Shown here: positions 2,389 to 14,903 of the stretch, piece by piece
Numbering within the stretch: position 1 is the first letter of the stretch
How the letters are laid out: each line of letters opens with the position of its first letter
Sequence record: ON000910.1
Strand: one strand, 5' to 3'
DNA length: 64,000 bases
Translations under genes and position numbers: made by a program
The notes under the pieces: generated by a model
Database searches by the model: none
What the model was told of the DNA's origin: nothing
Seen by the model: the letters and a program-made list of their open reading frames with translations, nothing else

Positions 2389-2655
2389 ATGTCACAACAA
2401 ACTGCTGAACAAGTAATCGAACAGAAAGACGCACAAATCAAAGATCTTAAAGTGCGTACCTTTGACCTACAAGAGACTCTTCAAGAAGAGCGCAATTCTT
2501 TTGGTCAGTTCGTGGGTGTACTAGCTCAACTACTCGATTTCGATCAGACGCAAGCAAGTTCTCTACAGAACTACGTTGACGAAATCGCAATTCTAACCGG
2601 TAAAGCTGAACGTCCTGCTGAAGGCGACGGCGAACAAGAAAAAGACGCTGAATAA
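2389..2655 (+). CDS. 57A: Tail fibre assembly chaperone gp57A
   Basis: Small acidic coiled-coil protein between gene 1 and 57B, as in T4. Confidence 0.7.
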   Translation: MSQQTAEQVIEQKDAQIKDLKVRTFDLQETLQEERNSFGQFVGVLAQLLDFDQTQASSLQNYVDEIAILTGKAERPAEGDGEQEKDAE

Positions 2656-3110
2656 TGAAACTATCTAAGTTCCTTGAAAGTCAGGGAACTTACGTTGGTA
2701 TCAGATTAGACGAGGCGAGTAAGCAAGAGTTAGTTCGATTGCAGAAAACGCTTCGTCTAAAAAATCCGTTAGAACCAGATAAATTTCACGTGACTGTGCT
2801 TTATAGTCGTAAGCAAATTGATGTACCTGTTGTCGATACCACTTTCGTTGCTACTGTTGAACATATCGACTGTTGGAAAACGCAAGACGGCAAATATGCA
2901 GTTGTTGCTAAGATGGTATGTCCAGAACTTGTAGAACGTCACGATGATCTTATCTCTATCGGTGGTACTCACGACTACCCTGACTATACCCCTCACGTTA
3001 CGTTGTCTTATGACGACGCGATCACACCTATGTCCGTCAACGCTGAAGTTCGGCTTGTTGATGAATATCTTGAACCACTTGATTTAAATTGGGTTGATAG
3101 TAATGACTGA
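2655..3110 (+). CDS. acb1: 2H phosphoesterase gp57B / anti-CBASS nuclease Acb1
   Basis: Two HxT motifs (FHVTVLYSR, PHVTLSY), W.TQDG, G.THDY.DYTPH and EY.EPL.L.W as in T4 57B. Confidence 0.88.
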   Translation: MKLSKFLESQGTYVGIRLDEASKQELVRLQKTLRLKNPLEPDKFHVTVLYSRKQIDVPVVDTTFVATVEHIDCWKTQDGKYAVVAKMVCPELVERHDDLISIGGTHDYPDYTPHVTLSYDDAITPMSVNAEVRLVDEYLEPLDLNWVDSND

Positions 3111-3776: not shown

Positions 3777-3899
3777 CGAGTGTTGGTGTAGTGGCAGCAC
3801 ACGTAGCATACTGTAATCAGGCATGATTATATTCAGCAACCAATTTACGCATATCATAGGGAGATCGTGGGAACGGTTCGATTCCGTTACACTCGACCA
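3777..3899 (+). ncRNA. tRNA chimera 1: Pro-like scaffold (C1-G72, loop ATAGGGA) with 49-nt insert in the anticodon stem
   Basis: Acceptor CGAGTGT/ACACTCG-ACCA, D arm, T arm AACGG-TTCGATT-CCGTT; insert 3804-3852 contains GTAATC-AG..GATTAT-AT-TCAGCAA. Confidence 0.8.
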
Positions 3900-4156: not shown

Positions 4157-4281
4157 GCAGGGTTGGTGTAGTGGCTAGCACACGTAGCATAAACGCAAGC
4201 TGTTAAGTTTGTATTCTGCAATCAATTTAGCATATCATTTCCAAGATCGTGACGCAGGTTCGAATCCTGCACCCTGCTCAA
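4157..4281 (+). ncRNA. tRNA chimera 2: Gly-like scaffold (G1-C72, U73, TTCCAA loop, 3' CAA) with 49-nt insert
   Basis: GCAGGGT/ACCCTGC, T arm GCAGG-TTCGAAT-CCTGC; insert 4185-4233 contains GCAAGC-TG-TTA-A-GTTTGT-AT-TCTGCAA. Confidence 0.8.
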
Positions 4282-4289
4282 TATGTTTT

Positions 4290-4396
4290 TACTACTTTGC
4301 CAACGAGAAAAATAATTTTCGCGGGGTGTTGGTTAAAAGGTTCGAATCCTTGGTTAGGTAGCGTTTCGACGCCCTGACAAGCGAAACAAAGTAGTA
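4290..4396 (+). ncRNA. Multibranch RNA with a T-loop hairpin
   Basis: TACTACTTTG/CAAAGTAGTA closing stem; AAGG-TTCGAAT-CCTT; CCAAC/GTTGG and GTTAGG/CCTGAC stems. Confidence 0.55.
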
Positions 4397-4403
4397 ATAT
4401 AAT

Positions 4404-4521
4404 GGTGAAGTTAGTTCAGTAGGTTAGAACGCCGGCCAAAAAAAACGAAGTCTGATAAGATTTCATTCTGCATTCACATGCACGCCGGAGGTCGCAGGTT
4501 CGAGTCCTGCACTTCACCTTC
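4404..4521 (+). ncRNA. tRNA chimera 3: Asp-like scaffold with insert in the anticodon loop, no encoded CCA
   Basis: GTTC-AGTAGGTTA-GAAC D arm, CCGGC/GCCGG stem, T arm GCAGG-TTCGAGT-CCTGC; insert contains GAAGTC-TG-ATA-A-GATTTC-AT-TCTGCAT. Confidence 0.78.
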
Positions 4522-4528
4522 AAATTCT

Positions 4529-4653
4529 GGAGAGTTAGCTCAGTCTGGTAGAGCAAAAGAATGTTAAAGAATACTGACAAGCATTCATGCTGCAAACCTT
4601 AATAACTAGGTAAATCTTTTTGTCACGTGGTTCAAATCCCGTACTCTCCACCA
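4529..4653 (+). ncRNA. tRNA chimera 4: scaffold with AAAGA/TCTTT anticodon stem enclosing a 54-nt expanded loop
   Basis: GGAGAGT/ACTCTCC-ACCA, GCTC/GAGC D arm, TTCAAAT T loop; insert contains GAATAC-TG-ACA-A-GCATTC-AT-GCTGCAA. Confidence 0.78.
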
Positions 4654-4667
4654 ATTTTCGAGGGTTT

Positions 4668-5036
4668 ATGAATAAGTTTAATGACATTAATGACGAACTT
4701 GATTGTATATTGCATCGTTGTGAGATTGTAAAGCGCAATCTTCGAAAATATTGTACATTTGCTGTTGAAATGCAGTATAGACTTATGATAAACTTCATTG
4801 GCATGGGTTGCTATCAACAAGTTCTGCCGATATTAGACAATCTAAATTATCACCCTGATACAAGTCAGTTTGATAATATTGAGATTATGCAAACTATAAA
4901 AGAATTGATGAAATGTGCAGATAAGCTCGATGAGCTACATCAACAAGACGCTTTTCATCAAATTAAATCGACTGCTCGTATTACAGAAGAAGCAAACATC
5001 TTCGCTGCGAAAGTTGGTCGATTTCTGGAGAAATGA
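4668..5036 (+). CDS. Hypothetical protein
   Basis: GAGG SD before ATG 4668; the longer track start lies inside a tRNA-like RNA. Confidence 0.65.
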   Translation: MNKFNDINDELDCILHRCEIVKRNLRKYCTFAVEMQYRLMINFIGMGCYQQVLPILDNLNYHPDTSQFDNIEIMQTIKELMKCADKLDELHQQDAFHQIKSTARITEEANIFAAKVGRFLEK

Positions 5037-5037
5037 T

Positions 5038-5115
5038 GGCCCTATAGCTCAACACGGTTAGAGCAACCGACTCATAATCGGTAGGTTACAGGTTCGAGTC
5101 CTGTTGGGGTCACCA
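5038..5115 (+). tRNA. tRNA-CAT (elongator Met or Ile2)
   Basis: Full cloverleaf, loop CTCATAA, ACCA end. Confidence 0.9.
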
Positions 5116-5194
5116 AAAATAAATTGAAAAAGTTGTTGACAGACGTTTCATCAACGTGTAGTATACACATTATCAACTACACGAGGAAAACATT

Positions 5195-5425
5195 ATGTCA
5201 CATAAATTGCTAGTTATCACATCAATGCACGGTTGCTACGTCGATTACGATTTCAGAACTGAAATGTTTGACAGATACATGTGTGATGTTGTGATTCCGA
5301 ACGACTCTGTTGTTTTGTACTCGGGTACAGTTTCAATAGATGAAATTCAAGCAGTTGCGAACGAATGTTACGCTGACATCAAGATTGAAGAAGTCAGTGA
5401 TGATGTTTTTGACAGCTATCTTTAA
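5195..5425 (+). CDS. Hypothetical early protein
   Basis: Upstream TTGACA...TAGTAT promoter and GAGG SD. Confidence 0.7.
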   Translation: MSHKLLVITSMHGCYVDYDFRTEMFDRYMCDVVIPNDSVVLYSGTVSIDEIQAVANECYADIKIEEVSDDVFDSYL

Positions 5426-5429
5426 AAAT

Positions 5430-5669
5430 GCCGCTAACTGGCGTACAATACACAGTGTATTCCCAACATTAGTGCAGACGTAGGCTCGCAACCTACGTTG
5501 GTACCGAATCACTGGGACCGAGTAGAAAGTGCATGTGAGATGTCGAAGTCTTGTATGTAGAAATAACGCTCGGCTGCTCTGAAATGCTGATTAGCTCTTA
5601 CTTCGAAACTCTAATTGGGTGGAAGAGGTGTTGTGTTTGACGTGTGTTCGATTCACACGAGCGGCGCCA
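5430..5669 (+). ncRNA. 240-nt tRNA-like RNA with tmRNA-type architecture
   Basis: GCCGCT/AGCGGC-GCCA acceptor, CGTGTG-TTCGATT-CACACG T arm, AACTGG D-like loop, ACAATAC/GTGTTGT helix enclosing ~175 nt. Confidence 0.65.
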
Positions 5670-5682
5670 AGAGGAAATTATA

Positions 5683-6207
5683 ATGAAACCATTGAAGTTC
5701 GTTGAAGCGTTCTCTAAAGAAGAACGTGCTGCTATGACGATTGAAGAACGTAGCAGACTTCGTAAAATATATAACGAACGCTATCAAGAGTATGTTGATA
5801 AGTACATCAATGTATTCACTCGAAAAGACTTTCGAAGAGAGCGTTGCTGGGTTATTCTTGCACGATGTAAAAAGACTGGTGAAATCATCGGTCGAATTGA
5901 AAATAGTTTTAGTATGGGATGGTCTAAAGAACGTGTTCGTGTTATTCGACCGTATCTAAACGGTAATTTCACGGGCGATGATCGCTTCTCTAAAGCTGAG
6001 TACAACAAAGCGTGTGCTGAGTACATAACTCATCATGAGAAACAAGTAAAGTCTCTCAGAGAAGCTTACAAAGACACTCACGACGTTTTCTTATCTCGTG
6101 TGGGTAGTAAGAACTGTCCTGTTTCTATTGATTGGGATACGTATTACAATAAAAAAGACAAACGAAACTTTGAATATCGAAATTTGAAGTTCAAAACGAA
6201 ATCATAA
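5683..6207 (+). CDS. Hypothetical basic protein
   Basis: GAGG SD, ATG 5683; the track start lies within the T arm of the ncRNA. Confidence 0.7.
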   Translation: MKPLKFVEAFSKEERAAMTIEERSRLRKIYNERYQEYVDKYINVFTRKDFRRERCWVILARCKKTGEIIGRIENSFSMGWSKERVRVIRPYLNGNFTGDDRFSKAEYNKACAEYITHHEKQVKSLREAYKDTHDVFLSRVGSKNCPVSIDWDTYYNKKDKRNFEYRNLKFKTKS

Positions 6208-6238
6208 ATACTTTCTTTTAGAGTTTAGAGGAAGAAGT

Positions 6239-6535
6239 ATGAAAACGTTTGGTGAATTCCTAATTGAATTTGGTGGCGGCGGATTTCAATCTGGCGCTGC
6301 TGATGACAGTAGATTTTTAGAAGAACTTGTTCGCAGGTTGCAGAAGAAGCAAGTTCAAATTAGTAAGAAAACTGATTCTGTGAATTGGGGTCATGGTAAA
6401 ATCACGGTTAGAGATGGGAAAGTTCGTTATATTACGAAATATGATGGCCCGCGTGATTTCAAAGAGTTTAGTAGTACACGTGAATTCATGGATGCGTTCA
6501 TGAAAGGTGACTACACTCAATTGCAAGACAAATAA
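6239..6535 (+). CDS. Putative internal head protein
   Basis: N-terminus MKTFGEFLIE resembles the T4 capsid-targeting sequence; late promoter CATAAATA at 6203. Confidence 0.6.
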   Translation: MKTFGEFLIEFGGGGFQSGAADDSRFLEELVRRLQKKQVQISKKTDSVNWGHGKITVRDGKVRYITKYDGPRDFKEFSSTREFMDAFMKGDYTQLQDK

Positions 6536-6540
6536 TTTAT

Positions 6541-6656
6541 AGTCGGGTAGCTCAGTGGTAGAGCACGAAGAATGATACTGACAAGTATCGCTCCAGCACT
6601 CCTTCAATTGCCTGTTAAGCACGTGGTCGCTGGTTCGAATCCAGCCCCGACTACCA
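6541..6656 (+). ncRNA. tRNA chimera 5: Asn(GTT) scaffold with 41-nt insert in the anticodon stem
   Basis: Removing 6568-6608 gives CGTGC-CTGTTAA-GCACG and a 75-nt cloverleaf with ACCA; insert contains TGATAC-TG-ACA-A-GTATCG-CT-CCAGCAC. Confidence 0.82.
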
Positions 6657-6682
6657 TTTTTGATAAACTAGTGAGGTATAAC

Positions 6683-6919
6683 ATGAGCGGAACATTTAAT
6701 ATCAACAAAACGTTACTGACTCCGAAACAATTGCGCAATCTAACAGATGAGCGTCTAAATGAATATCGCAAGTCGTTTCGTAAGCCTCTTGGTTTTTTGA
6801 AGCATCTGAACGATACAAACGAATTGACTTCAGATCAACACAAGAAATTCGTTGAGCTTAATAAGCACTATAACGACGAAATCCTTGTTGAAATGAACAA
6901 GCGAAAACACTTAGGTTAA
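6683..6919 (+). CDS. Hypothetical protein
   Basis: GAGG SD before ATG 6683. Confidence 0.65.
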   Translation: MSGTFNINKTLLTPKQLRNLTDERLNEYRKSFRKPLGFLKHLNDTNELTSDQHKKFVELNKHYNDEILVEMNKRKHLG

Positions 6920-7187
6920 TAAAATCGCAGAAAGTTGAAATTTTTTTCAATTTTCTGCGAAAATATCGCAAATCGTCAGATTTAGTGTTATAAGTACTAT
7001 AAAGAAACAAAACAAATTTTAATTTTTATTTCAAGAGAGCATTCAATGACGCATTCGTTTACACATTCATCTGAGACATTACGCAGCGATTTTCTGCGCT
7101 CAGAATTCGTGTATCTAGCGAATCCGATTGCGAACCAGAAGTGGGATACCCTCTTGTAGTCCGATAGTATAACATAGAAGTATACTT

Positions 7188-7212
7188 GAGGACGCAAATA
7201 GCGTCCTTTTTT
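7188..7212 (+). terminator. Rho-independent terminator
   Basis: GGACGC-AAATA-GCGTCC followed by T7. Confidence 0.8.
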
Positions 7213-7290
7213 TATGGGCGCAATAAAAGTCAAAAATTTTGTTTAACGTACTTTGATTACAGAGTATGATAAACAAAGTTAAAGAACAAA

Positions 7291-7364
7291 CGGGACGTGG
7301 CGTAAAGGTAGCGTTCATGCTTTGGGAGCATGTGGTAAGAGTTCGAGTCTCTTCGTCCCGACCA
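7291..7364 (+). tRNA. tRNA-Pro(TGG)
   Basis: Cloverleaf, loop TTTGGGA, ACCA. Confidence 0.9.
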
Positions 7365-7373
7365 ATTTAAAAT

Positions 7374-7450
7374 CCGTGACTAGCTCAATCTGGTAGAGTA
7401 CTCCGTTTGGGGCGGAGAAGTTAAGCGTTCGAATCGCTTGTCACGGACCA
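7374..7450 (+). tRNA. tRNA-Pro(TGG)
   Basis: Cloverleaf, loop TTTGGGG, ACCA. Confidence 0.9.
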
Positions 7451-7458
7451 GTTTTAAT

Positions 7459-7534
7459 GCCCGATTAGCTCAATTGGAAGAGCAGCGTCCTACGAAGGCG
7501 AAGGTTACAAGTTCGAATCTTGTATTGGGTGCCA
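7459..7534 (+). tRNA. tRNA-Arg(ACG)
   Basis: Cloverleaf, loop CTACGAA, GCCA. Confidence 0.9.
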
Positions 7535-7740
7535 GTTAGTGTTGTTTGATTGAAGCTCGTTTTCGCACATTCCCGAAACTGCTTCTACGATTTGATACGC
7601 TTAGGACCGTATCTCGTTAAGTACTGTCGAGATGATAGAATTTAGCGAACTTTTTCATAAATTAGTGTTTATGATGTCTTGAGCGAGTGTTAATATTAAC
7701 ACATAGAAAATGAAAACGTTAAGTTCTTCAAAATAAATTC

Positions 7741-7868
7741 AAAAAGATGTTTACAATGACGAAAACATCATGTACAATAGAGAAAAGCGAAATATCATTC
7801 AAAGCTGAATGAAAAGTTTTTCAAAAAAAGATGTTTACAACGATATAAACATCATGTACAATAGAGAA
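7741..7868 (+). promoter_or_regulatory. Two tandem near-identical T4-type early promoters
   Basis: AAAAAGATGTTTACAA-N-AAACATCATGTACAATAGAGAA at ~7741 and ~7826 (GTTTAC -35, TACAAT -10). Confidence 0.8.
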
Positions 7869-7872
7869 GAAC

Positions 7873-8091
7873 ATGAATGACATAATTAAAGATGTGTCAA
7901 AGTTGACACTGAAAGAAAACGAACGTGTAGTGTTTAGAGTTGATGTCGGTGATTTACCAGCATCGAAAGCTAATCAGTATATACAAAATTTAGTCGATTT
8001 ATTGAAAGAAGCGGGAATTACTAACTCAATTGTTATTCCGTCATCAATAGAAATTTCCGTAATCGATGAAAACGAATTAATGCGCAAGTAG
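7873..8091 (+). CDS. Small protein resembling a segment of T4-type portal (VDVGDLPASKANQY)
   Basis: ORF behind tandem early promoters; similarity to recalled portal motif FYIDVGNLP..KA.QY. Confidence 0.55.
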   Translation: MNDIIKDVSKLTLKENERVVFRVDVGDLPASKANQYIQNLVDLLKEAGITNSIVIPSSIEISVIDENELMRK

Positions 8092-8159
8092 CCCAATCTG
8101 GCAGAGGCACTGGTCTTAGAAACCAGAAGTTAAGAGTTCGAATCTCTTCTTGCGTACCA
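8082..8159 (+). tRNA. tRNA-Leu(TAG), short variable loop
   Basis: Loop CTTAGAA, 5-nt variable region, ACCA. Confidence 0.85.
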
Positions 8160-8160
8160 T

Positions 8161-8235
8161 GCACCCTTAGCTTATCAGGAAAAGCGGCGGATTGAAGTCC
8201 CGCAGTGCTCGGTTCGATTCCGAGGGGGTGCACCA
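8161..8235 (+). tRNA. tRNA-Phe(GAA)
   Basis: Cloverleaf, loop TTGAAGT, one anticodon-stem mismatch, ACCA. Confidence 0.8.
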
Positions 8236-8323
8236 TATTATAGCTTGTTTGTAAGAGTTAAATCAAGCAAGGGATTTTAGTTTTGAGTTATTTAGCAAAC
8301 GCTCTTAACGTGAAAATCAAATT

Positions 8324-8398
8324 GGGTCGTTAGTATAACGGTAGTACATCTGGCTTTTAACCAGAAGGGTGAGAGTTCGAATCTCTTGCGACCCACCA
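8324..8398 (+). tRNA. tRNA-Lys(TTT)
   Basis: Loop CTTTTAA, ACCA. Confidence 0.9.
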
Positions 8399-8409
8399 GT
8401 TTTTATAAT

Positions 8410-8486
8410 GCGTCGGTAGCTCATCATGGAAGAGCAGGGAGCTTTTAACTCTCAGGTGTCTGGTTCGAGTCCAGAGCGGCGTACCA
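8410..8486 (+). tRNA. tRNA-Lys(TTT)
   Basis: Loop CTTTTAA, ACCA; G7-G66 mismatch. Confidence 0.85.
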
Positions 8487-8549
8487 AATTAGATACATTG
8501 TGTATCGCTTTGCAAGTTAGATAGCTTGCAAATCAATATACAATTTAAT

Positions 8550-8624
8550 TCTCCCGTGGACTAACGGTAGGTCATCACCCTTTCAAGGTGAAGTGCGCGA
8601 GTTCGAATCTCGTCGGGAGAACCA
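8550..8624 (+). tRNA. tRNA-Glu(TTC)
   Basis: Loop CTTTCAA, ACCA. Confidence 0.88.
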
Positions 8625-8630
8625 TATTCT

Positions 8631-8716
8631 GGAGCGTACGTCTCAAGGTGAGACAGGGGACTGTAAATCCCTGACCCTTAACGGGTAGAGAGGTTCGATT
8701 CCTCTACGCTCCACCA
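8631..8716 (+). tRNA. tRNA-Tyr(GTA)
   Basis: Loop CTGTAAA, long variable arm, ACCA. Confidence 0.9.
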
Positions 8717-8721
8717 GTTTT

Positions 8722-8809
8722 AGCTTGCATACTGCAATTTAACTTAATCTATTGATCGCTCGGCGGGCATTGCTCAGACAGCGATAAACAGACCAAAGAA
8801 CGCAAGCTG
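8722..8809 (+). ncRNA. Stand-alone GCAA-motif RNA
   Basis: A-GCTTGC-AT-ACTGCAA ... GCAAGC-TG. Confidence 0.7.
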
Positions 8810-8818
8810 TTGAATAAT

Positions 8819-8895
8819 TGCGGAGTAGAGCAGCGGTCAGCTCGCCAGTTTCATAAGCTGGAGGTCAGTGGTTCGAATCCACTCTCACGCATCCA
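8819..8895 (+). tRNA. tRNA-Met(CAT), initiator-like D arm, irregular acceptor stem
   Basis: GAGC/GCTC D stem, loop TTCATAA, extra A in 3' acceptor strand, TCCA; lacks the GGG/CCC pairs of fMet. Confidence 0.7.
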
Positions 8896-8902
8896 AACAA
8901 AT

Positions 8903-9001
8903 GGAAGGCTTAGCCGAAAGATTCTGGGTAGCGGCAACGGTCTTGAAAACCGTCGGTCACCGGGAGGTGATGTTAGGGTTCGAATCCCTAGTCTTCCGCC
9001 A
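8903..9001 (+). tRNA. tRNA-Ser(TGA)
   Basis: Loop CTTGAAA, long variable arm, GCCA; enlarged D loop. Confidence 0.88.
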
Positions 9002-9064
9002 ATTAGTTAACCGGGAAGTTTAGTCACTTAACCGATTAACAGTGCGCTGAAATGCGCACACTTT

Positions 9065-9138
9065 AGTCCCTTAGCTCAACGGTAGAGCGTGCGACCGATA
9101 ATCGCTTGGTAAGAGTTCGATTCTCTTAGGGACTACCA
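9065..9138 (+). tRNA. tRNA-Ile(GAT)
   Basis: Loop CCGATAA (C33), ACCA. Confidence 0.85.
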
Positions 9139-9144
9139 AATTTT

Positions 9145-9218
9145 AGGGGCATGATGTAAAGGCAGCATGACGGATTCCAAACCCGTTCGTTAGAGTTCGA
9201 ATCTCTATGCCCCTGCCA
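9145..9218 (+). tRNA. tRNA-Trp(CCA)
   Basis: Loop TTCCAAA, GCCA. Confidence 0.88.
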
Positions 9219-9223
9219 GTTTA

Positions 9224-9282
9224 AGTAATCTTACAGCAAACAATACAAAACTTTTATTTGGAAAAAGCAAAAAGGATTACTG
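9224..9282 (+). ncRNA. Minimal GCAA-motif RNA
   Basis: A-GTAATC-TT-ACAGCAA ... GATTAC-TG with an A-rich loop. Confidence 0.7.
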
Positions 9283-9292
9283 TTTAAATTTA

Positions 9293-9368
9293 GGATCGCT
9301 AACTCAATGGTTAGAGTGCTCGCCTGTTAAGCGAGGAGTTCCGAGTTCGAGTCTCGGGCGGTCCGCCA
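9293..9368 (+). tRNA. tRNA-Asn(GTT)
   Basis: Loop CTGTTAA, GCCA. Confidence 0.92.
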
Positions 9369-9438
9369 AATTCGGAGAGTCACTACCGTTAAGTGTGAAC
9401 TTGAAAAAAACAAAGCAACTACTTTAAGTTGTCTTTGG

Positions 9439-9514
9439 GGAGCCGAGGTGTAAAAGGTTGCATGTCTCCCTGTCACGGAGAAGGTAGCGGGTTCGAAACC
9501 CGTCGGTTCCGCCA
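9439..9514 (+). tRNA. tRNA-Asp(GTC)
   Basis: Loop CTGTCAC, GCCA. Confidence 0.9.
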
Positions 9515-9533
9515 AAGATAATTTAAGAACAAT

Positions 9534-9607
9534 TGGGGATTGGTGTAAAGGCAGCATAACGTACTTTGAATGCGTTGGTATCAGTTCGAATCTGTTATCC
9601 CCAGCCA
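9534..9607 (+). tRNA. tRNA-Gln(TTG)
   Basis: Loop CTTTGAA, T1-A72, GCCA. Confidence 0.9.
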
Positions 9608-9615
9608 AATACCAT

Positions 9616-9732
9616 AGAGTGTTTTCAGCAAACAATTTACTAATATTCTTCTGATGAAAAGAAAAGTTCGGGGTTCGATTCCTCTTCAGTGTCGGTATCA
9701 CTGGTCTGGACGACGCTAGTAATAACACTCAG
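9616..9732 (+). ncRNA. GCAA-motif RNA enclosing a T-loop module (YrlA-like layout)
   Basis: A-GAGTGT-TT-TCAGCAA ... ACACTC-AG; internal GGGG-TTCGATT-CCTC and CAGTG/CACTG hairpins. Confidence 0.72.
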
Positions 9733-9736
9733 TTAC

Positions 9737-9811
9737 GCTCCTGAAGCATTGATGGCGATGCAGCGGTCTTGTAAACCGCAGAATTCGGTTCGATTCCGAA
9801 CGGGAGCACCA
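9737..9811 (+). tRNA. tRNA-Thr(TGT)
   Basis: Loop CTTGTAA, ACCA. Confidence 0.9.
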
Positions 9812-9836
9812 TATTGATTAGAGAGTGTTATCATGA

Positions 9837-9844
9837 TATAAATA
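9837..9844 (+). promoter_or_regulatory. T4-type late promoter
   Basis: TATAAATA upstream of 9875. Confidence 0.8.
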
Positions 9845-9874
9845 TTCATGTAACTACATTTTAGAGGTAATAAC

Positions 9875-10150
9875 ATGTCTATTAAAACATTTTCTGAATA
9901 TCTTAACGAAGCAAAGCATCGTGGGTCTGGCGTAGACACTCATGACGGGAAGATTCCGTATGTATACGCTGACAGTAAAGACGCTGCTGCATTTGCTGAT
10001 TTCGTATCGTCAATAGGTATGAAGCTTGATTCGAACGGTGAATTGAAGCTTTCTACACGAGATAAAGTACGAAAGTTCTTCTCAGAGCTTGATCAAGAAG
10101 CAACTAATTTCATGCTTCATGGCAACTTTGATATTATTGAATATATGTAA
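9875..10150 (+). CDS. Putative internal head protein
   Basis: MSIKTFSEYLNE capsid-targeting-like N-terminus; late promoter; GAGG SD. Confidence 0.62.
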   Translation: MSIKTFSEYLNEAKHRGSGVDTHDGKIPYVYADSKDAAAFADFVSSIGMKLDSNGELKLSTRDKVRKFFSELDQEATNFMLHGNFDIIEYM

Positions 10151-10165
10151 AAATTGGTGATTGTA

Positions 10166-10375
10166 ATGGTATATATTTCTGTATGGTGTGAATATGACAT
10201 TGGTGGGGATTTCGGTGGCAACAATAACGAAGATGTTTTTTCCGTTAGTGAAGAATTATCTAATGAAGAAGTTGAAGCAAAAGTTGCTGAATATATTTCT
10301 GACATTGTTGGTGAGCCGATTGAAGAACTTGAAGGTTTATACGGTTGGGAATATATTTCAATCACACAGTTGTAA
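10166..10375 (+). CDS. Hypothetical acidic protein
   Basis: ORF with GGTGA SD. Confidence 0.6.
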   Translation: MVYISVWCEYDIGGDFGGNNNEDVFSVSEELSNEEVEAKVAEYISDIVGEPIEELEGLYGWEYISITQL

Positions 10376-10382
10376 AAAATAT

Positions 10383-10457
10383 GGGCCGTTAGCTTAATTG
10401 GGAAAGCGCCTCACTTGCAATGAGGAAGATAGGGTTCGACTCCCTGCGTGTCCACCA
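10383..10457 (+). tRNA. tRNA-Ala(TGC), irregular acceptor stem
   Basis: Loop CTTGCAA, G3-U70, ACCA. Confidence 0.8.
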
Positions 10458-10531
10458 AATTTCGAACACATGAGCGTAGACTCTCTTTACTACCATCGTC
10501 TACACTAGCTCATGGTTCGAAACTTTTCAAT

Positions 10532-10607
10532 GCGCTGTTAGCTCAATTGGAAGAGCACGTCCCTTCTAAGGATGGGGTTATGAGTTCGAATCTCATACGG
10601 CGTGCCA
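10532..10607 (+). tRNA. tRNA-Arg(TCT)
   Basis: Loop CTTCTAA, GCCA. Confidence 0.92.
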
Positions 10608-10670
10608 TATTAAGCTCTTATCATGTGACGAATGATACTTTGCTTCGGCATATCACGAGCATGGTGAGAG

Positions 10671-10787
10671 AGACAATATACAGCAAACAATTGAAATTAC
10701 TTAAAAGAAGTGATGATCTTAACCTGGGCTGATTTTAACCTGAGCTTGCTTGGGCGCAGCTTGAAAGGAAAGATTCTCTCTGTCTAG
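10671..10787 (+). ncRNA. GCAA-motif RNA
   Basis: A-GACAAT-AT-ACAGCAAACAATT ... TGTC-TAG (4 of 6 bp). Confidence 0.6.
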
Positions 10788-10789
10788 AA

Positions 10790-11127
10790 ATAGTCAGATA
10801 GGCGCGTCGCTGAAACAGACGATATTTGCTTATTGAGAATCAATAAGCTAGTCAACTCCGATTTATGCAAAAGACGAAAAAACACTTCGGTATTGTCTGT
10901 ACTTAATTCGTCGGAAACGACACTGTAGCCGAAAGGCAAGTTTACTAACTTAGTTGTTAGTCGTGATACAGGAAGTATCATGTGGCATTATTATGAACGT
11001 TTCTAGTCATCGTCATGTAAAACAATCAAAACTAAGCAGAGGTAACAGTACCCACTATGTGGTTCCTCACTCAGACCATGAATATATGGTGTCAGCCAGT
11101 GTGCGATTAAATGAGTAATTACTGCAA
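10790..11127 (+). ncRNA. Candidate ~340-nt structured RNA with GAAA tetraloops, ending in a permuted GCAA motif
   Basis: GTCG-GAAA-CGAC, GCC-GAAA-GGC, GCTTATTG/CAATAAGC, TGATAC/GTATCA; TCACTC-AG ... GAGTAA-TT-ACTGCAA. Confidence 0.5.
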
Positions 11128-11129
11128 TT

Positions 11130-11205
11130 GGTGACGTAGCTCAAGTGGCAGAGCCACGCTTTCATACGGCGTAAGATCCGATTTCGAGTATCGGTGTCAC
11201 CTCCA
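11130..11205 (+). tRNA. tRNA-Met(CAT)
   Basis: Loop TTCATAC, TCCA end. Confidence 0.82.
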
Positions 11206-11230
11206 AATTCAAACAAAGAGGTTAAGAAGC

Positions 11231-11388
11231 ATGACTACTTTACACTAAGCAAGGGCAACATACGCGATAAGATTCGCTGTGTTGAAAATCGTCTCGCAGA
11301 AGAGACCAACCCGTTCTTTATAAGAACACTTACTGTAGAGCTTACGAATCTACGTGCAATACGTGATTTGTTCGACGCTTCAGATTAA
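11231..11388 (+). pseudogene. Frameshifted small ORF
   Basis: SD AGAGG and ATG ACT ACT TTA CAC TAA; inserting one T joins it to the open frame TLSKGNIRDK...DASD*. Confidence 0.45.
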
Positions 11389-11392
11389 CAAT

Positions 11393-11466
11393 GCGGGTAT
11401 GATGTAATGGTAGCATGACGTCCTTCCAAGTCGTTCGTCTCGGTTCGAGTCCGTGTACCCGCTCCA
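11393..11466 (+). tRNA. tRNA-Gly(TCC)
   Basis: Loop CTTCCAA, U73, TCCA. Confidence 0.9.
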
Positions 11467-11472
11467 AATTTT

Positions 11473-11546
11473 GGTCCCTTAGTATAATGGCAGTACGTCT
11501 CTTTTACACAGAGAAAGAAGTGGCTCGATTCCACTAGGGACTACCA
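11473..11546 (+). tRNA. tRNA-Val(TAC)
   Basis: Loop TTTACAC, T loop CTCGATT (C54), ACCA. Confidence 0.85.
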
Positions 11547-11569
11547 TTCTTTATGATGAGAAATAAATT

Positions 11570-11809
11570 ATGACGCCTGCATTACTTGAAACTCATGAAT
11601 ACGTAAACCACAACCAAATCGAAAAGCTACAGCAAATGGACAGACTTATGTTTGATTGTTGGCGTGCTGGGTATAAACGTGGCAAGATTTTAGAGCTTGC
11701 ATTGTCGATTGAGTCTTCAACAACCGAAGCAGACATCGAAATTTATTTCAAAAATATGTTTACAAGAGAACTATCGGCTGATAGTATCTACTTAAAGAAA
11801 ACTGTATGA
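11570..11809 (+). CDS. Hypothetical protein
   Basis: ORF between tRNAs with GAG SD. Confidence 0.6.
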   Translation: MTPALLETHEYVNHNQIEKLQQMDRLMFDCWRAGYKRGKILELALSIESSTTEADIEIYFKNMFTRELSADSIYLKKTV

Positions 11810-11961
11810 CGGAGTAGTGCTCCGACCGAATGACACACGCAAATGAGTCCGGTTGACAAACGTTATATGTCCCAAAGTATTGCAGGTAGCGACGGCGGTG
11901 TTGCTAGTAGATTTATCTATTTCTCCAAGACATAATGCAAGCTTTTAAAGTGTACTTTGGT

Positions 11962-12038
11962 GTGGCAGTGGGTGAAGTGGAAATACCCCCGGGTTGTGAT
12001 TCCGGAAGATGCGGGTTCGATCCCCGTCTGTCACCCCA
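11962..12038 (+). tRNA. tRNA-His(GTG)
   Basis: Loop TTGTGAT, C73, CCA; encoded -1 base is T, not G. Confidence 0.85.
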
Positions 12039-12050
12039 AAGTACATTTAT

Positions 12051-12124
12051 GCTCGAATCGTATAATGGCAGTATGACGGATTGCAAATCCGCAGGTCAGG
12101 GTTCGATTCCCTGTTCGAGCTCCA
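12051..12124 (+). tRNA. tRNA-Cys(GCA)
   Basis: Loop TTGCAAA, U73, TCCA. Confidence 0.9.
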
Positions 12125-12332
12125 GAAAAGACGATGCACAAGTTGGATGTGCAAAGGGGTCGGTTATGGTTCAACGCTTTATGCGTATAGGGTTAATCGC
12201 CTAGAACTGAGCATGTTTGAGTTGCTACTCACGAATGTAGTGATGAGTGCGTAAGAAGCCCGTAGCTAGTATAATGAGTTGATAACTCGGCAGCCTAGCA
12301 GTGTCGCCAACATCGACATAACGACACATAAT

Positions 12333-12409
12333 GCGCACGTGGTCCAATTGGCAGAGGCATGAGGCTTAAAATCTCAGGGATGGCGGTTCGAATCCGCCCG
12401 TGCGTACCA
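12333..12409 (+). tRNA. tRNA-Leu(TAA), short variable loop
   Basis: Loop CTTAAAA, 5-nt variable region, ACCA. Confidence 0.85.
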
Positions 12410-12524
12410 AATTCTAGCATAAGCCGCATTCTAACGAAGCTAGACTACCGCCGTTGAAAAACGGTCTCAGCCGAGCGAAAGCTGACAGGCGTTAGGGATT
12501 AAAGAGTTGCGGCAGCTTATTCAA

Positions 12525-12601
12525 GCCCAACTAGTCCAATTGGCAGAGGCGCTAGTTTCAAACACTAGATGATCCGAGTTCGAATCTCGGGTTGGGCACC
12601 A
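12525..12601 (+). tRNA. tRNA-Leu(CAA), short variable loop
   Basis: Loop TTCAAAC, 5-nt variable region, ACCA. Confidence 0.85.
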
Positions 12602-12697
12602 AATTCACTTAGCAACGCGAATCGAAAGAGAGTGGATAGACCTGCTAAGAGTCCCGCTAGGTCTTTAAATTATCTAAAGTGGATCTGCGAAGCGCGT

Positions 12698-12732
12698 GGC
12701 ACACGTCAGCAATAAGAGCAAATATGTGTCTG
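12698..12732 (+). ncRNA. Minimal GCAA-motif hairpin
   Basis: GGCACA-CG-TCAGCAA ... TGTGTC-TG. Confidence 0.6.
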
Positions 12733-12769
12733 AGCATGAGAGCAGCATGCCACTAATTGATGAGACGTT

Positions 12770-12858
12770 GGAAGCATGGTCTAAAGGTATGACAGCACCC
12801 TGCTAAGGTGTCGGACGTTAATAGCGTTCTCTGGGTTCGACTCCCAGTGCTTCCGCCA
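12770..12858 (+). tRNA. tRNA-Ser(GCT)
   Basis: Loop CTGCTAA, long variable arm, GCCA. Confidence 0.9.
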
Positions 12859-12863
12859 AATTC

Positions 12864-13122
12864 GCAATAAGACATTGTACAGCAATCATTACAAATCAAA
12901 GCAAACTTTAATAGTAATGAGGCGCACTAGCTGCTTTCTCAGTGATGACGTGAGCCTGTCGCATTCTCGTGGTAGGAAATGACCATTAAGACGGTGTTCG
13001 TACTGTCAAACGAAATAGGACTCATGCCGAATCATGGGTATTTTTCCGATGAGAAACATCGTTATAGTCAATTGAGATTTAAGGAAAGACGATAAAACAC
13101 TTCTTGAATGTCTGTGTATTGC
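12864..13122 (+). ncRNA. ~255-nt GCAA-motif RNA, last in the cluster
   Basis: GCAATA-A-GACATT-GT-ACAGCAA ... AATGTC-TG-TG-TATTGC; internal CATTAC/GTAATG, GACGGTG-TTCG-TACTGTC, CGATG/CATCG. Confidence 0.72.
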
Positions 13123-13123
13123 A

Positions 13124-13190
13124 CAAAAAAACCTGCCGTGAGCAGGTTTTTTTGTTTCTTCAAAATAAAAAGAGCCTTTCGGCTCTTTTA
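13124..13190. terminator. Two convergent terminators ending the tRNA operon and the - strand gene
   Basis: AAAAAAACCTGC-CGTGA-GCAGGTTTTTTT and AAAAAGAGCC-TTTC-GGCTCTTTT. Confidence 0.85.
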
Positions 13191-14903
13191 TCGACTAAGC
13201 ATAAACTCAACCGCAGGGGCTAAGATTGTATTGCCTGAGCTTGTTGTATAAGGCCCAAACGTATCAACTGAAAAATCATCACCATTTAAATTACGCAATC
13301 TAATGCGATAGTAACGACTTGAGTTCATATTCAGAATCGTATCAATTAGAAACATCGAACGATCAGTTTGAAGGTCATCCATTCTGAACGCTGAGGTTTC
13401 TTGAGTAAATGCTGATGCTGTTGTTGTATCAGTAGCCGCAGATTCAACCCACGCTATAATTTCAGGATCTGAACCTCCACCTGAACGGTCTATACTAACT
13501 CTTAGATTTATATGCATCGGTTTATCTTCGAGCGGTCTGAAGTTGTCGGATGTCGATGAATACTCAAACAATGCCCCTGTTTCATTTGTTGCTGAAAGTG
13601 GGATTGTACCTTCAGAACCAGTTGCATTCAATGTAAGAACGTTAGTATCAGTGTTACTTGATTTTTGGAATATGATATCTTTGTCAGATATGTACCCTGC
13701 GTCATTACTCAATTCAGAAATATTATCGCCTGCTACTAACGCGTTCGTTTCCAATGCAGTCACGCGAGTGTCCACTGCGTCTAATTCTGGTTGAATTACT
13801 ACTGACTCATCTACGAAACTTCGTATTGTCGGTTTGTTCCATGGAACTGATGTACTTGCGTTACCCCAAACTACAACATCTACATTCGGATTTCTCAATT
13901 CGACTTCTAGTACGTCCTGTGCTCTTATGTCAAACGGTGGTTCTATTAGAACATCAAATTCACCCGGCGTGACATTTATAATCTTAGTTTGGTAATATTC
14001 TATTGAATTTTTATATACGATTACATCAACTTCCCCATATGCGTTGACGAAATCAACCACGACTGAGTATAGCGTGCGATTGTTTGGCATCTGGGCGAGT
14101 TCCCAACGTGGATTTGACAGTTGTGCCGACTTGTCAGAATATTCAGCGACTACTTCTGCGGAACGAACTCTAACTATACCAGTATTTCCTTCATCGTAAG
14201 TTTGCCATAATGGATGAAAGCTTATATTGTCAATTATATTTGTGACTGCGATGTTTTGACCTGATGATGATATCTTGTGTGCATTTGCAAGATATAAGTC
14301 ACCGCTTCCCGACTGTACAGCCGCTAACGAGAATTTGTTTGGGTCATATGCTACTGGGTCGGTTGCGCCGCGCCAATAGTATGAGCTTGCACGACCTGCG
14401 AACTCTTGTACGAATACAGGTAGCCCATTTTTCAATAGCGACTTATTCCCTGAAGTAGAAAAGAACGAGTCTCTTTCTGCAATTGACGCAAATGGTGGTA
14501 TAGAACCTTCGCCTGATGGGCCAACTGGGCCCGGTATTCCCTCGACAATTCTCTGCGAAATCCACTGCGTTCCTGTGTATGTTTGTCTTTCTGCTACTGT
14601 ACCCCCGAGCGAAACGTCTTCATATACGAGGTCAATTGATGATGTAGGGTTATTGACGTAGTAAGCAACCCATGATGGGTTTGATGACGCATGAGCGTCT
14701 CTTAGAGCTATTGCTGCGTCTCTGTCTCCTGTACCTGCGTCAAATGAATTTGGAGTAATCCCAAGTGGGAATGGGGTTAATGAATCCTCTGGGATTATTT
14801 CCCATTCTTCATCCTTTCGCCCGTATAATAATCCGTTTACAGGGGCTTCTTCGATATATTGTGGTAGTGATTGCCCACCGCCGGGTAAATTAATCGAACT
14901 CAT
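13188..14903 (-). CDS. Putative virion fibre/whisker protein
   Basis: N-terminal foldon-like EAPVNGLLYGRKDEEW, short collagen-like GIPGPVGPSG, beta-rich body. Confidence 0.6.
   Translation of the reverse strand: MSSINLPGGGQSLPQYIEEAPVNGLLYGRKDEEWEIIPEDSLTPFPLGITPNSFDAGTGDRDAAIALRDAHASSNPSWVAYYVNNPTSSIDLVYEDVSLGGTVAERQTYTGTQWISQRIVEGIPGPVGPSGEGSIPPFASIAERDSFFSTSGNKSLLKNGLPVFVQEFAGRASSYYWRGATDPVAYDPNKFSLAAVQSGSGDLYLANAHKISSSGQNIAVTNIIDNISFHPLWQTYDEGNTGIVRVRSAEVVAEYSDKSAQLSNPRWELAQMPNNRTLYSVVVDFVNAYGEVDVIVYKNSIEYYQTKIINVTPGEFDVLIEPPFDIRAQDVLEVELRNPNVDVVVWGNASTSVPWNKPTIRSFVDESVVIQPELDAVDTRVTALETNALVAGDNISELSNDAGYISDKDIIFQKSSNTDTNVLTLNATGSEGTIPLSATNETGALFEYSSTSDNFRPLEDKPMHINLRVSIDRSGGGSDPEIIAWVESAATDTTTASAFTQETSAFRMDDLQTDRSMFLIDTILNMNSSRYYRIRLRNLNGDDFSVDTFGPYTTSSGNTILAPAVEFMLSR

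Follow-up and report, generated by a model that had tools for sequence, protein, structure and literature searches.

Modules that resemble part of a tRNA occur in RNAs that take no part in decoding, among them the engineered ‘tRNA scaffold’ expression system, the tRNA-miRNA (TMER) transcripts of the herpesvirus MHV68 and MALAT1/mascRNA, where the module attracts the enzymes of tRNA processing and shields or frees the functional RNA attached to it. A tRNA-like domain is also found in YrlA, a non-coding RNA that is sometimes phage-encoded, and in transfer-messenger RNA (tmRNA), which combines it with an mRNA-like domain made up of a resume codon, a tag open reading frame (ORF) and a stop codon. 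Stable tRNA-like RNAs encoded by phages, or RNAs that carry such a domain, are a kind already known. According to a review of post-transcriptional control in T4 (PMC3014915), what RNAC and RNAD do is unknown, and no small RNA of that phage acting in trans has had its function characterised. The subject of the present analysis is a 240-nt RNA gene at positions 5430-5669 (plus strand) of a 64,000-nt stretch of sequence record ON000910.1, referred to as the window at its full length, which derives from a KVP40-like Vibrio myophage and in which the gene sits inside the large tRNA cluster. An initial annotation, made from the letters of the window, had recognised the layout of a tmRNA and suggested a tmRNA derivative, a decoy of SmpB or EF-Tu, or a relative of the T4 stable RNA species. 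Comparison among phages shows a conserved, covarying, non-coding RNA, which seems to represent a new family of phage RNAs. Literature searched on KVP40 together with tmRNA, tRNA-like or small RNA, a coverage that did not extend to the KVP40 genome paper, holds no description of it, and Rfam, searched both at its gathering threshold and with the looser cutoff E<=10, yielded no known family.

Conservation and fold of the vibriophage RNA

Searches with blastn place the RNA in 49 phage records, all of them from Vibrio phages (Schizotequatrovirus, Mylasvirus and unclassified relatives). The surrounding 501-nt stretch (5300-5800) is 100% identical to vB_ValM_R10Z and XZ1 and 87% to KVP40; in the distant phages D480, F86, VS1, nt-1, QD01 and 1.081.O the blastn alignment is limited to approximately 5422-5685 and leaves the flanking ORFs unaligned. 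An additional member lies on an ENA metagenome scaffold (L049:2862-3101, 205.7 bits). Pattern scans returned solely KVP40 and VH7D from IMG/VR, no member from JGI metagenomes, and eight matches, all due to chance, from GTDB genomes. One candidate, L032, was examined and is not a homologue, and in Aeromonas phage Aes508 and in RB43 the syntenic tRNA region has neither the RNA nor the family of expanded tRNA-like genes described below. Twelve distinct homologues, 70-100% identical and ranging in length from 237 to 241 nt, make up alignment A3; a covariance model, R1, was built, and realignment of the 12 sequences to it gave alignment A5. The elements of the RNA, with their positions in the window, are the following:

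5430..5669, +: the RNA gene in full, 240 nt with its encoded CCA; 255.5 bits with covariance model R1, across all 240 positions
5428..5429, +: A-2 and U-1 before the predicted RNase P site; invariant (AU followed by G in 8/8 distinct types), the rest of the flank being variable
5430..5436, +: acceptor stem, 5' strand GCCGCUA; 100% paired, both-sided change in 4/6 pairs
5437..5445, +: D-loop analogue, stemless, ACUGGCGUA; GG at 5440-5441 invariant
5446..5455, +: P2, 5' strand CAA-U-ACACAG with U5449 bulged; 100% paired with 5631-5639; double changes AU/UA, AU/GC and AU/GC
5461..5517, +: arm 1; P3 (5461-5465/5513-5517) and P4 hairpin (5472-5484/5492-5504, loop CUCGCAA)
5518..5573, +: arm 2; P5 (5518-5522/5569-5573), A-rich internal loop and P6 hairpin (5530-5541/5548-5559)
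5587..5630, +: plausible H-type pseudoknot; S1 (5587-5594/5611-5618) and S2 (5599-5605/5624-5630), abutting P2
5631..5639, +: P2, 3' strand UUGUGUUUG; 9-bp helix with three doubly compensated positions
5642..5658, +: T arm GUGUG / UUCGAUU / CACAC; 100% paired, both-sided change in 4/5 pairs
5659..5669, +: acceptor 3' strand GAGCGGC (5659-5665), discriminator G5666 and CCA (5667-5669)

In A5, whose pair counts are biased towards the R1 structure because the alignment was fitted to that model, standard pairs fill 96.0% of 803 cells, compared with 79.5% when shuffled and 35-43% when partners are slid, and both-sided changes occur at 37 of the 67 pairs; the observed values were matched on no measure by any of 500 shuffles. 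The fold of the single sequence is unremarkable (z = -1.64), so that the case rests on the comparison between phages. This comparison bears out the tmRNA-like layout first read from the window, namely a module of acceptor stem and T arm, a stemless GG loop, and a long helix that enters a structured body, all of it covarying. The structured interior is kept in the 12 homologues, including the three body helices originally singled out (UCCCA/UGGGA, ACGUAGG/CCUACGU and CCGAG/CUCGG), each retained with compensatory changes. Stop codons interrupt all six frames of every homologue, a 1-nt insertion in F86 falls within the most conserved stretch, and no frame is conserved among homologues, in agreement with the earlier view that the RNA shows no convincing Ala-rich tag ORF. 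A recurrent ‘ALTSKL...’ frame, considered as a tag ORF, was rejected: it lies within the pseudoknot, has clade-dependent stops, is frameshifted in F86 and shows no synonymous variation.

The acceptor stem, the T arm and the 9-nt GG connector without D stem were found where they had been placed initially, as were C3-G70 and G73 in the window sequence. Across homologues, C3-G70 occurs in 12 of 12 sequences and G1-C72 is likewise invariant, pairs 2:71 and 4:69-7:66 vary, position 7 is an A.G mismatch in the window where relatives have G.A, U-G or A-U, and G, A and C all occur as the discriminator. The T loop reads UUCGAUU, or UUCGAGU in one phage, and the D-loop analogue has three invariant columns in A3 (G11, G12 and G14). 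The encoded CCA, also part of the initial description, holds for the window and the R10Z/KVP40 clade only, the discriminator being followed by ACA or AC in other clades. The tRNA genes of the window nearly all encode CCA, and the neighbouring tRNA-Met gene does so in seven of the eight phages compared; in 1.081.O its called end falls short of CCA, but ACCA follows directly. In nt-1 the RNA begins 11 nt past the CCA of tRNA-Met. The D-loop analogue could also engage in another pairing, GGCGU at 5440-5444 (GGUGC in the VS1 clade) with 5633-5637 of the P2 3' strand (GUGUU / GCGCC), possible at each position in at least seven of eight sequences tested, which may reflect an alternative conformer or the mere result of a G/U-rich strand.

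The helix connecting this module to the body exists, although not in the register first proposed: ACAAUAC/GUGUUGU is just 89% paired and is broken in the VS1/nt-1 clade, and the supported register is CAA(U)ACACAG/UUGUGUUUG (5446-5455/5631-5639). Within arm 1, P3 is 93% paired with four of five pairs doubly changed, P4 is 92% paired with nine of 15 doubly changed, and the internal loop ACAUUAG/GAAUCAC includes P3b (5468-5470/5507-5509); the statement that the RNA lacks a GCAA motif is literally untrue, as GCAA stands at 5488-5491 in the P4 loop. Arm 2 has both-sided changes in 3/3 pairs of P5 and 10/11 pairs of P6, whose loop GUCGAA spans 5542-5547. In the 3' domain, S1 is an 8-bp helix with 96 of 96 cells paired and two doubly compensated positions (UA/AU, GC/AU), a result equalled by none of 1000 shuffles, and its loop is an invariant 16-nt stretch, CUCUUACUUCGAAACU, able to pair with 5624-5630 to form S2. 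This second helix is 89% paired and, because it is almost invariant, S2 and hence the H-type pseudoknot made by pairing with the S1 loop are plausible rather than proven. Two small hairpins proposed for the 3' domain by RNAalifold show no compensation and are mutually exclusive with S1; no antisense match for the 16-nt loop was found within the window. The unpaired elements that do not vary are the GG of the D-loop analogue, the internal loop of arm 1, the P6 loop and the A-rich loops flanking P6. A body of ~175 nt with invariant loops, pseudoknot, strong covariation and 70-100% identity beside diverged flanks points to selection on the RNA itself.

Transcripts and possible functions

Metatranscriptomes make a strong case for a discrete RNA species of ~230 nt whose 3' end is the acceptor end. 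Of the 31-mers sampled from 5400-5700, a share of 0.27-0.42 is present in seawater and other metatranscriptomes, against just 0.05 over 4300-6800, so that nearly all the 31-mers present derive from the RNA. Two runs from one seawater sample (X1 and X3) each gave one isolated 229-nt contig over 5443-5668 that ends there, and an independent seawater run (X4) gave an isolated 203-nt contig over exactly 5463-5666; the three contigs, from two independent samples, thus end no more than 2 nt from the predicted acceptor end. The adjacent ORFs (5140-5391 and 5728-6567) had zero coverage by metatranscriptome contigs. The contigs are variants of the window sequence with compensatory pairs in P6 (5539 G>A with 5550 C>U; 5540 A>U with 5549 U>A; 5540 A>G with 5549 U>C). 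An interior without conserved structure, or a failure of transcription or processing at the predicted ends, either of which the initial annotation had taken as grounds for dropping its proposal, is therefore not what these data show.

We lean, if only modestly, towards a free-standing non-coding RNA of KVP40-like vibriophages, stable and highly structured, in which a tRNA-like module of acceptor stem, T arm and GG loop, joined by the 9-bp P2 to the ~175-nt body, would serve as handle and the body as effector. The RNA would be excised from a polycistronic tRNA-cluster transcript by the tRNA-maturation machinery, with RNase P presumably cutting after the invariant U-1 and the 3' end being trimmed to the discriminator, to which the CCA-adding enzyme would supply CCA in clades not encoding one. 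Maturation by this machinery would make the tRNA-like module a handle for processing and nuclease protection, like a natural ‘tRNA scaffold’, and the invariant body would act as the effector, most likely a trans-acting protein-binding scaffold or decoy. The RNA is probably not aminoacylated and probably does not perform trans-translation, since the invariant C3-G70, a discriminator that may be G, A or C, and a CCA that is unconserved though neighbouring tRNAs encode it all argue against charging or tmRNA function.

Several points weigh against this reading. No partner or target was found, and the putative effector role is deduced solely from the invariant loops of the body; RNase P cleavage, CCA addition and non-charging are all predicted steps; and the tight junction between the RNA and the Shine-Dalgarno (SD) sequence that follows could mean that its main role is in cis. 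As for the transcripts, the X1/X3 library was oligo-dT selected according to the run record and depth is low (~4), a contig from one flanking gene (4823-5026) in X1 makes DNA carry-over formally possible, and the contigs start at 5443 and 5463 instead of 5430, leaving the 5' terminal 10-30 nt uncovered.

Among the alternatives, the closest to the initial proposal is a degenerate tmRNA or tmRNA mimic that has lost alanine identity and tag ORF and binds host SmpB, perhaps also EF-Tu or the ribosome, and thereby blocks or redirects trans-translation in the infected cell, which we consider unlikely. The RNA is not a tmRNA and fails the specific tmRNA tests of charging identity, reading frame and model match, and the ‘tmRNA derivative’ suggested at the outset is not supported as a family assignment: in place of the G3.U70 and A73 that direct charging by alanyl-tRNA synthetase there is an invariant C3-G70 and a variable discriminator, and in place of an mRNA-like domain there is no conserved frame but an indel in the conserved core, the ‘ALTSKL...’ frame in the pseudoknot having stops that differ and a frameshift in F86. 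The recommended check with ARAGORN and cmscan was negative at normal thresholds. Rfam tmRNA models gave no match at the gathering threshold, and the one weak match, best at 9.3 bits (E=0.58), is to the acceptor piece of beta_tmRNA; ARAGORN made no call on the RNA at its default (100%) or 95% thresholds. At 80% it called exactly 5430-5669, a point in favour of tmRNA ancestry; against it, the other calls among the nine in the window all sit in or next to the tRNA cluster (6383-14499), and at 70% its 148 calls in the window were at or below the rate in shuffled copies (157-190 each), which makes lowered thresholds uninformative. What does resemble tmRNA is the architecture of the tRNA-like domain, with acceptor stem, T arm, stemless D loop with GG and P2 leaving the elbow, all covarying, and the pseudoknot abutting the P2 3' strand. 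The GAC...GAC junction that flanks P2a in tmRNA does not seem to be conserved in the vibriophage RNA, which would speak against such descent, and Escherichia coli ssrA reaches just 14.1 bits against R1, at the 3' end only, the same as ordinary tRNAs. The SmpB/EF-Tu decoy first suggested is not supported as a family assignment either: the discriminator varies, tblastn with E. coli SmpB found 68 phage records, with Vibrio not among the ten organism groups named (each <=19 records, against 49 Vibrio phage records for the RNA), and the confident predicted fold of the ORF downstream of the RNA has no SmpB-like neighbour. The covarying structure is no tRNA cloverleaf either, having neither D stem nor anticodon stem, and the Rfam tRNA and group I intron models found no match on 5415-5685 at E<=10. 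Charging of the tRNA-like domain with an amino acid other than alanine, for use on the ribosome or as an aminoacyl donor, seems highly improbable, for although an intact acceptor stem and T arm, an invariant G1-C72 and C3-G70 and a CCA encoded in the R10Z/KVP40 clade speak in its favour, the discriminator and pairs 2:71 and 4:69-7:66 vary, anticodon and variable arms are missing, and gene-encoded CCA is not conserved.

Two further alternatives concern the setting of the gene more than its ancestry. That the RNA is a purely cis-acting processing or insulator element, whose tRNA-like fold directs RNase P and 3' cleavage and tunes the flanking mRNAs (‘tRNA punctuation’) with the released RNA as a by-product, is in our estimate quite unlikely. 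A plain tRNA or hairpin would suffice for punctuation, the ~175-nt body is constrained to 70-100% identity while the flanking ORFs diverge past blastn detection, and a discrete RNA persists in metatranscriptomes from which the adjacent ORFs were not recovered; these facts are set against a close fit to the neighbouring genes, with the stop codon of the upstream ORF 4 nt before the RNA and the SD of the next ORF 0-1 nt after it, a junction kept in all clades although the gene that follows is not always the same one. It is improbable, too, that this is an acceptor-end decoy, an abundant anticodon-less RNA that soaks up host toxins or defence effectors acting on tRNA 3' ends or elbows, alongside five expanded tRNA-like RNAs. 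The idea draws on those five paralogues, in which a conserved insert replaces the anticodon loop, on the anti-CBASS (cyclic oligonucleotide-based antiphage signalling system) gene acb1 (57B) in the same early region, and on an intact tRNA-like module with no sign of a decoding function, evidence that is wholly circumstantial; no defence system has been linked to the RNA, and a simple acceptor decoy leaves the highly constrained body unexplained.

Returning to the stand-alone RNA with handle and effector body, a broader proposal, doubtful but worth stating, is that KVP40-like phages use tRNA-shaped scaffolds as a general route to stable effector RNAs, the 240-nt RNA and the five expanded tRNA-likes forming a new class of RNAs acting in trans (as decoys or inhibitors, for instance, of host factors for translation quality control or for defence by tRNA targeting) that would be matured by the tRNA machinery and would not decode. 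With its clean ends, strong covariation, signs of environmental expression and genetically tractable phages (KVP40, nt-1), the system makes the role of tRNA-like stable phage RNAs directly testable.

Gene neighbourhood and expanded tRNA-like genes

Features of the locus outside the RNA itself are the following:

5136..5164, +: candidate sigma-70-like promoter TTGACA-17-TAGTAT; 10/12 consensus match, as a consensus match only
5670..5685, +: Shine-Dalgarno (AGAGGA) and ATG (5683) of the next ORF, beginning directly after the RNA
3777-3899, 4157-4281, 4405-4521, 4529-4653 and 6541-6656, +: five paralogous ‘expanded tRNA-like’ RNAs, 116-125 nt; 62-110 bits with R2

The candidate promoter, upstream of ORF 5195-5425, may mark the start of the RNA-bearing transcript. 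No informative match for the flanking ORFs was found in Pfam, PHROG, NCBIfam or PADLOC. The downstream ORF of 174 aa belongs to phrog_15953 and has a confident predicted fold (predicted local distance difference test score 86.8), the model having no informative structural neighbour and none that is SmpB-like; divergent homologues of this ORF exist without the RNA upstream. None of the phage records inspected has an RNA annotation at the position of 5430-5669. Instead, several carry coding sequence (CDS) calls that run into or across the RNA gene, L002:3343-3903 (KVP40.0317), L003:1207-1338 (QD01_344), L004:1379-1495 (VPHD480_0395) and L005:1229-1333 (VPHF86_0308), or that overlap it or start within it, L049:3001-3633. 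Calls that overlap the RNA or start within it are probably annotation artefacts or over-extended N-termini, and the practical point is that several GenBank records hold spurious or over-long CDS calls across the RNA. Further upstream, a 57B homologue at 2655-3110 (+) matches weakly the RNA 2',3'-cyclic phosphodiesterase family, and on related contigs the 57B gene carries Pfam Acb1, an anti-CBASS phosphodiesterase, which places an anti-defence gene in that early region, ~2.3 kb upstream of the RNA.

In each of the five expanded tRNA-like RNAs the acceptor stem, D arm and T arm are complete, and there is an anticodon stem where it can be traced (5 bp in two), with ~46-54 nt in place of the anticodon loop; this insert comprises a hairpin that covaries and has a loop of 6 nt (UGWHAA), a conserved CAUNCWGCA and a second hairpin. 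Two of the five are missed by both ARAGORN and Rfam, and three are called tRNA-Pseudo in the KVP40 record. The family is conserved in KVP40, D480, F86, VS1, QD01, nt-1 and 1.081.O and is absent, by R2, from the T4, Aes508 and RB43 regions searched. The insert of 4529-4653 starts with AUGUUAA, which can be read as the anticodon loop of a GUU (Asn) tRNA with a 46-nt ‘intron’ behind it; an R2-matched 121-nt gene of 1.081.O, only partly inside the stretch examined, is annotated as tRNA-Asn. Among the window tRNAs, counted as 26 by ARAGORN and 29 by Rfam, those missed by ARAGORN include a tRNA-Ala(UGC) at 10383-10457 (+; Rfam 44.9 bits) with G3.U70, A73 and acceptor-stem mismatches, with which the window tRNAs cover all 20 amino acids, and a third CAU-anticodon tRNA at 8820-8894 (+; Rfam 55.1 bits) that has no encoded CCA. 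Comparison of the window tRNAs for parentage of the tRNA-like module of the 240-nt RNA revealed no obvious parent.

Relation to known RNAs

The small stable RNAs rnaC (species 1) and rnaD (species 2) of T4 are the nearest in setting, for the tRNA cluster of the window lies downstream of genes 1, 57A and 57B, the neighbourhood of the T4 cluster with rnaD and rnaC, and both phages are T4-type; rnaC, moreover, ends like the vibriophage RNA in a T arm and an acceptor-like stem. They differ in size (139 and 119 nt), architecture and fold. With filters off, R1 scores rnaC at 13.4 bits, within the range of T4 tRNAs (9.6-18.8), and rnaD shows no meaningful match; R2 does not match rnaC. A kinship with the T4 stable RNA species, as first suggested, is thus not upheld by the covariance model, which ranks rnaC no better than ordinary tRNAs, and the relation is one of kind and location, homology not being demonstrated. 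A CUCUUAC heptamer stands in a hairpin loop of T4 rnaD (L011:2072-2091), whose 3' end reads ...CGGCGCACCA, and an invariant CUCUUAC stands at 5595-5601 of the window, where the 3' end of the RNA reads ...GCGGCGCCA; the match is too short for significance and is missed by the covariance model.

YrlA shares with the vibriophage RNA the combination of a non-coding RNA and a tRNA-like domain. In YrlA the Ro-binding helix is made by the ends of the RNA and the tRNA-like part lies inside, whereas here the ends form the acceptor stem; the YrlA model of Rfam found no match within 5430-5669, and its sole match in the region (32 bits, gathering score 69) lies across the junction of two neighbouring pseudo-tRNAs.

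The likeness to tmRNA is one of shape: the acceptor stem has 7 bp and a 3' CCA end, the T arm has 5 bp and the loop UUCGAUU, the D loop contains GG but lacks a stem, P2 departs between D loop and T arm to reach a structured body, and a pseudoknot lies beside the P2 3' strand. The vibriophage RNA differs in having C3-G70, not G3.U70, a variable discriminator in place of A73, and no tag ORF; it has one supported pseudoknot and two plain hairpin arms where tmRNA has PK1-ORF-H5-PK2-4, and at 237-241 nt it is shorter than typical bacterial tmRNAs. A tRNA-like domain of tmRNA type can, on this evidence, exist without alanine identity or tag ORF, which bears on the evolution of the domain and its recognition by proteins. 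The tRNA-scaffolded RNAs, finally, are eukaryotic, viral or artificial, whereas in the vibriophage RNA the payload takes the place of the D and anticodon arms within a bacteriophage tRNA-like fold.

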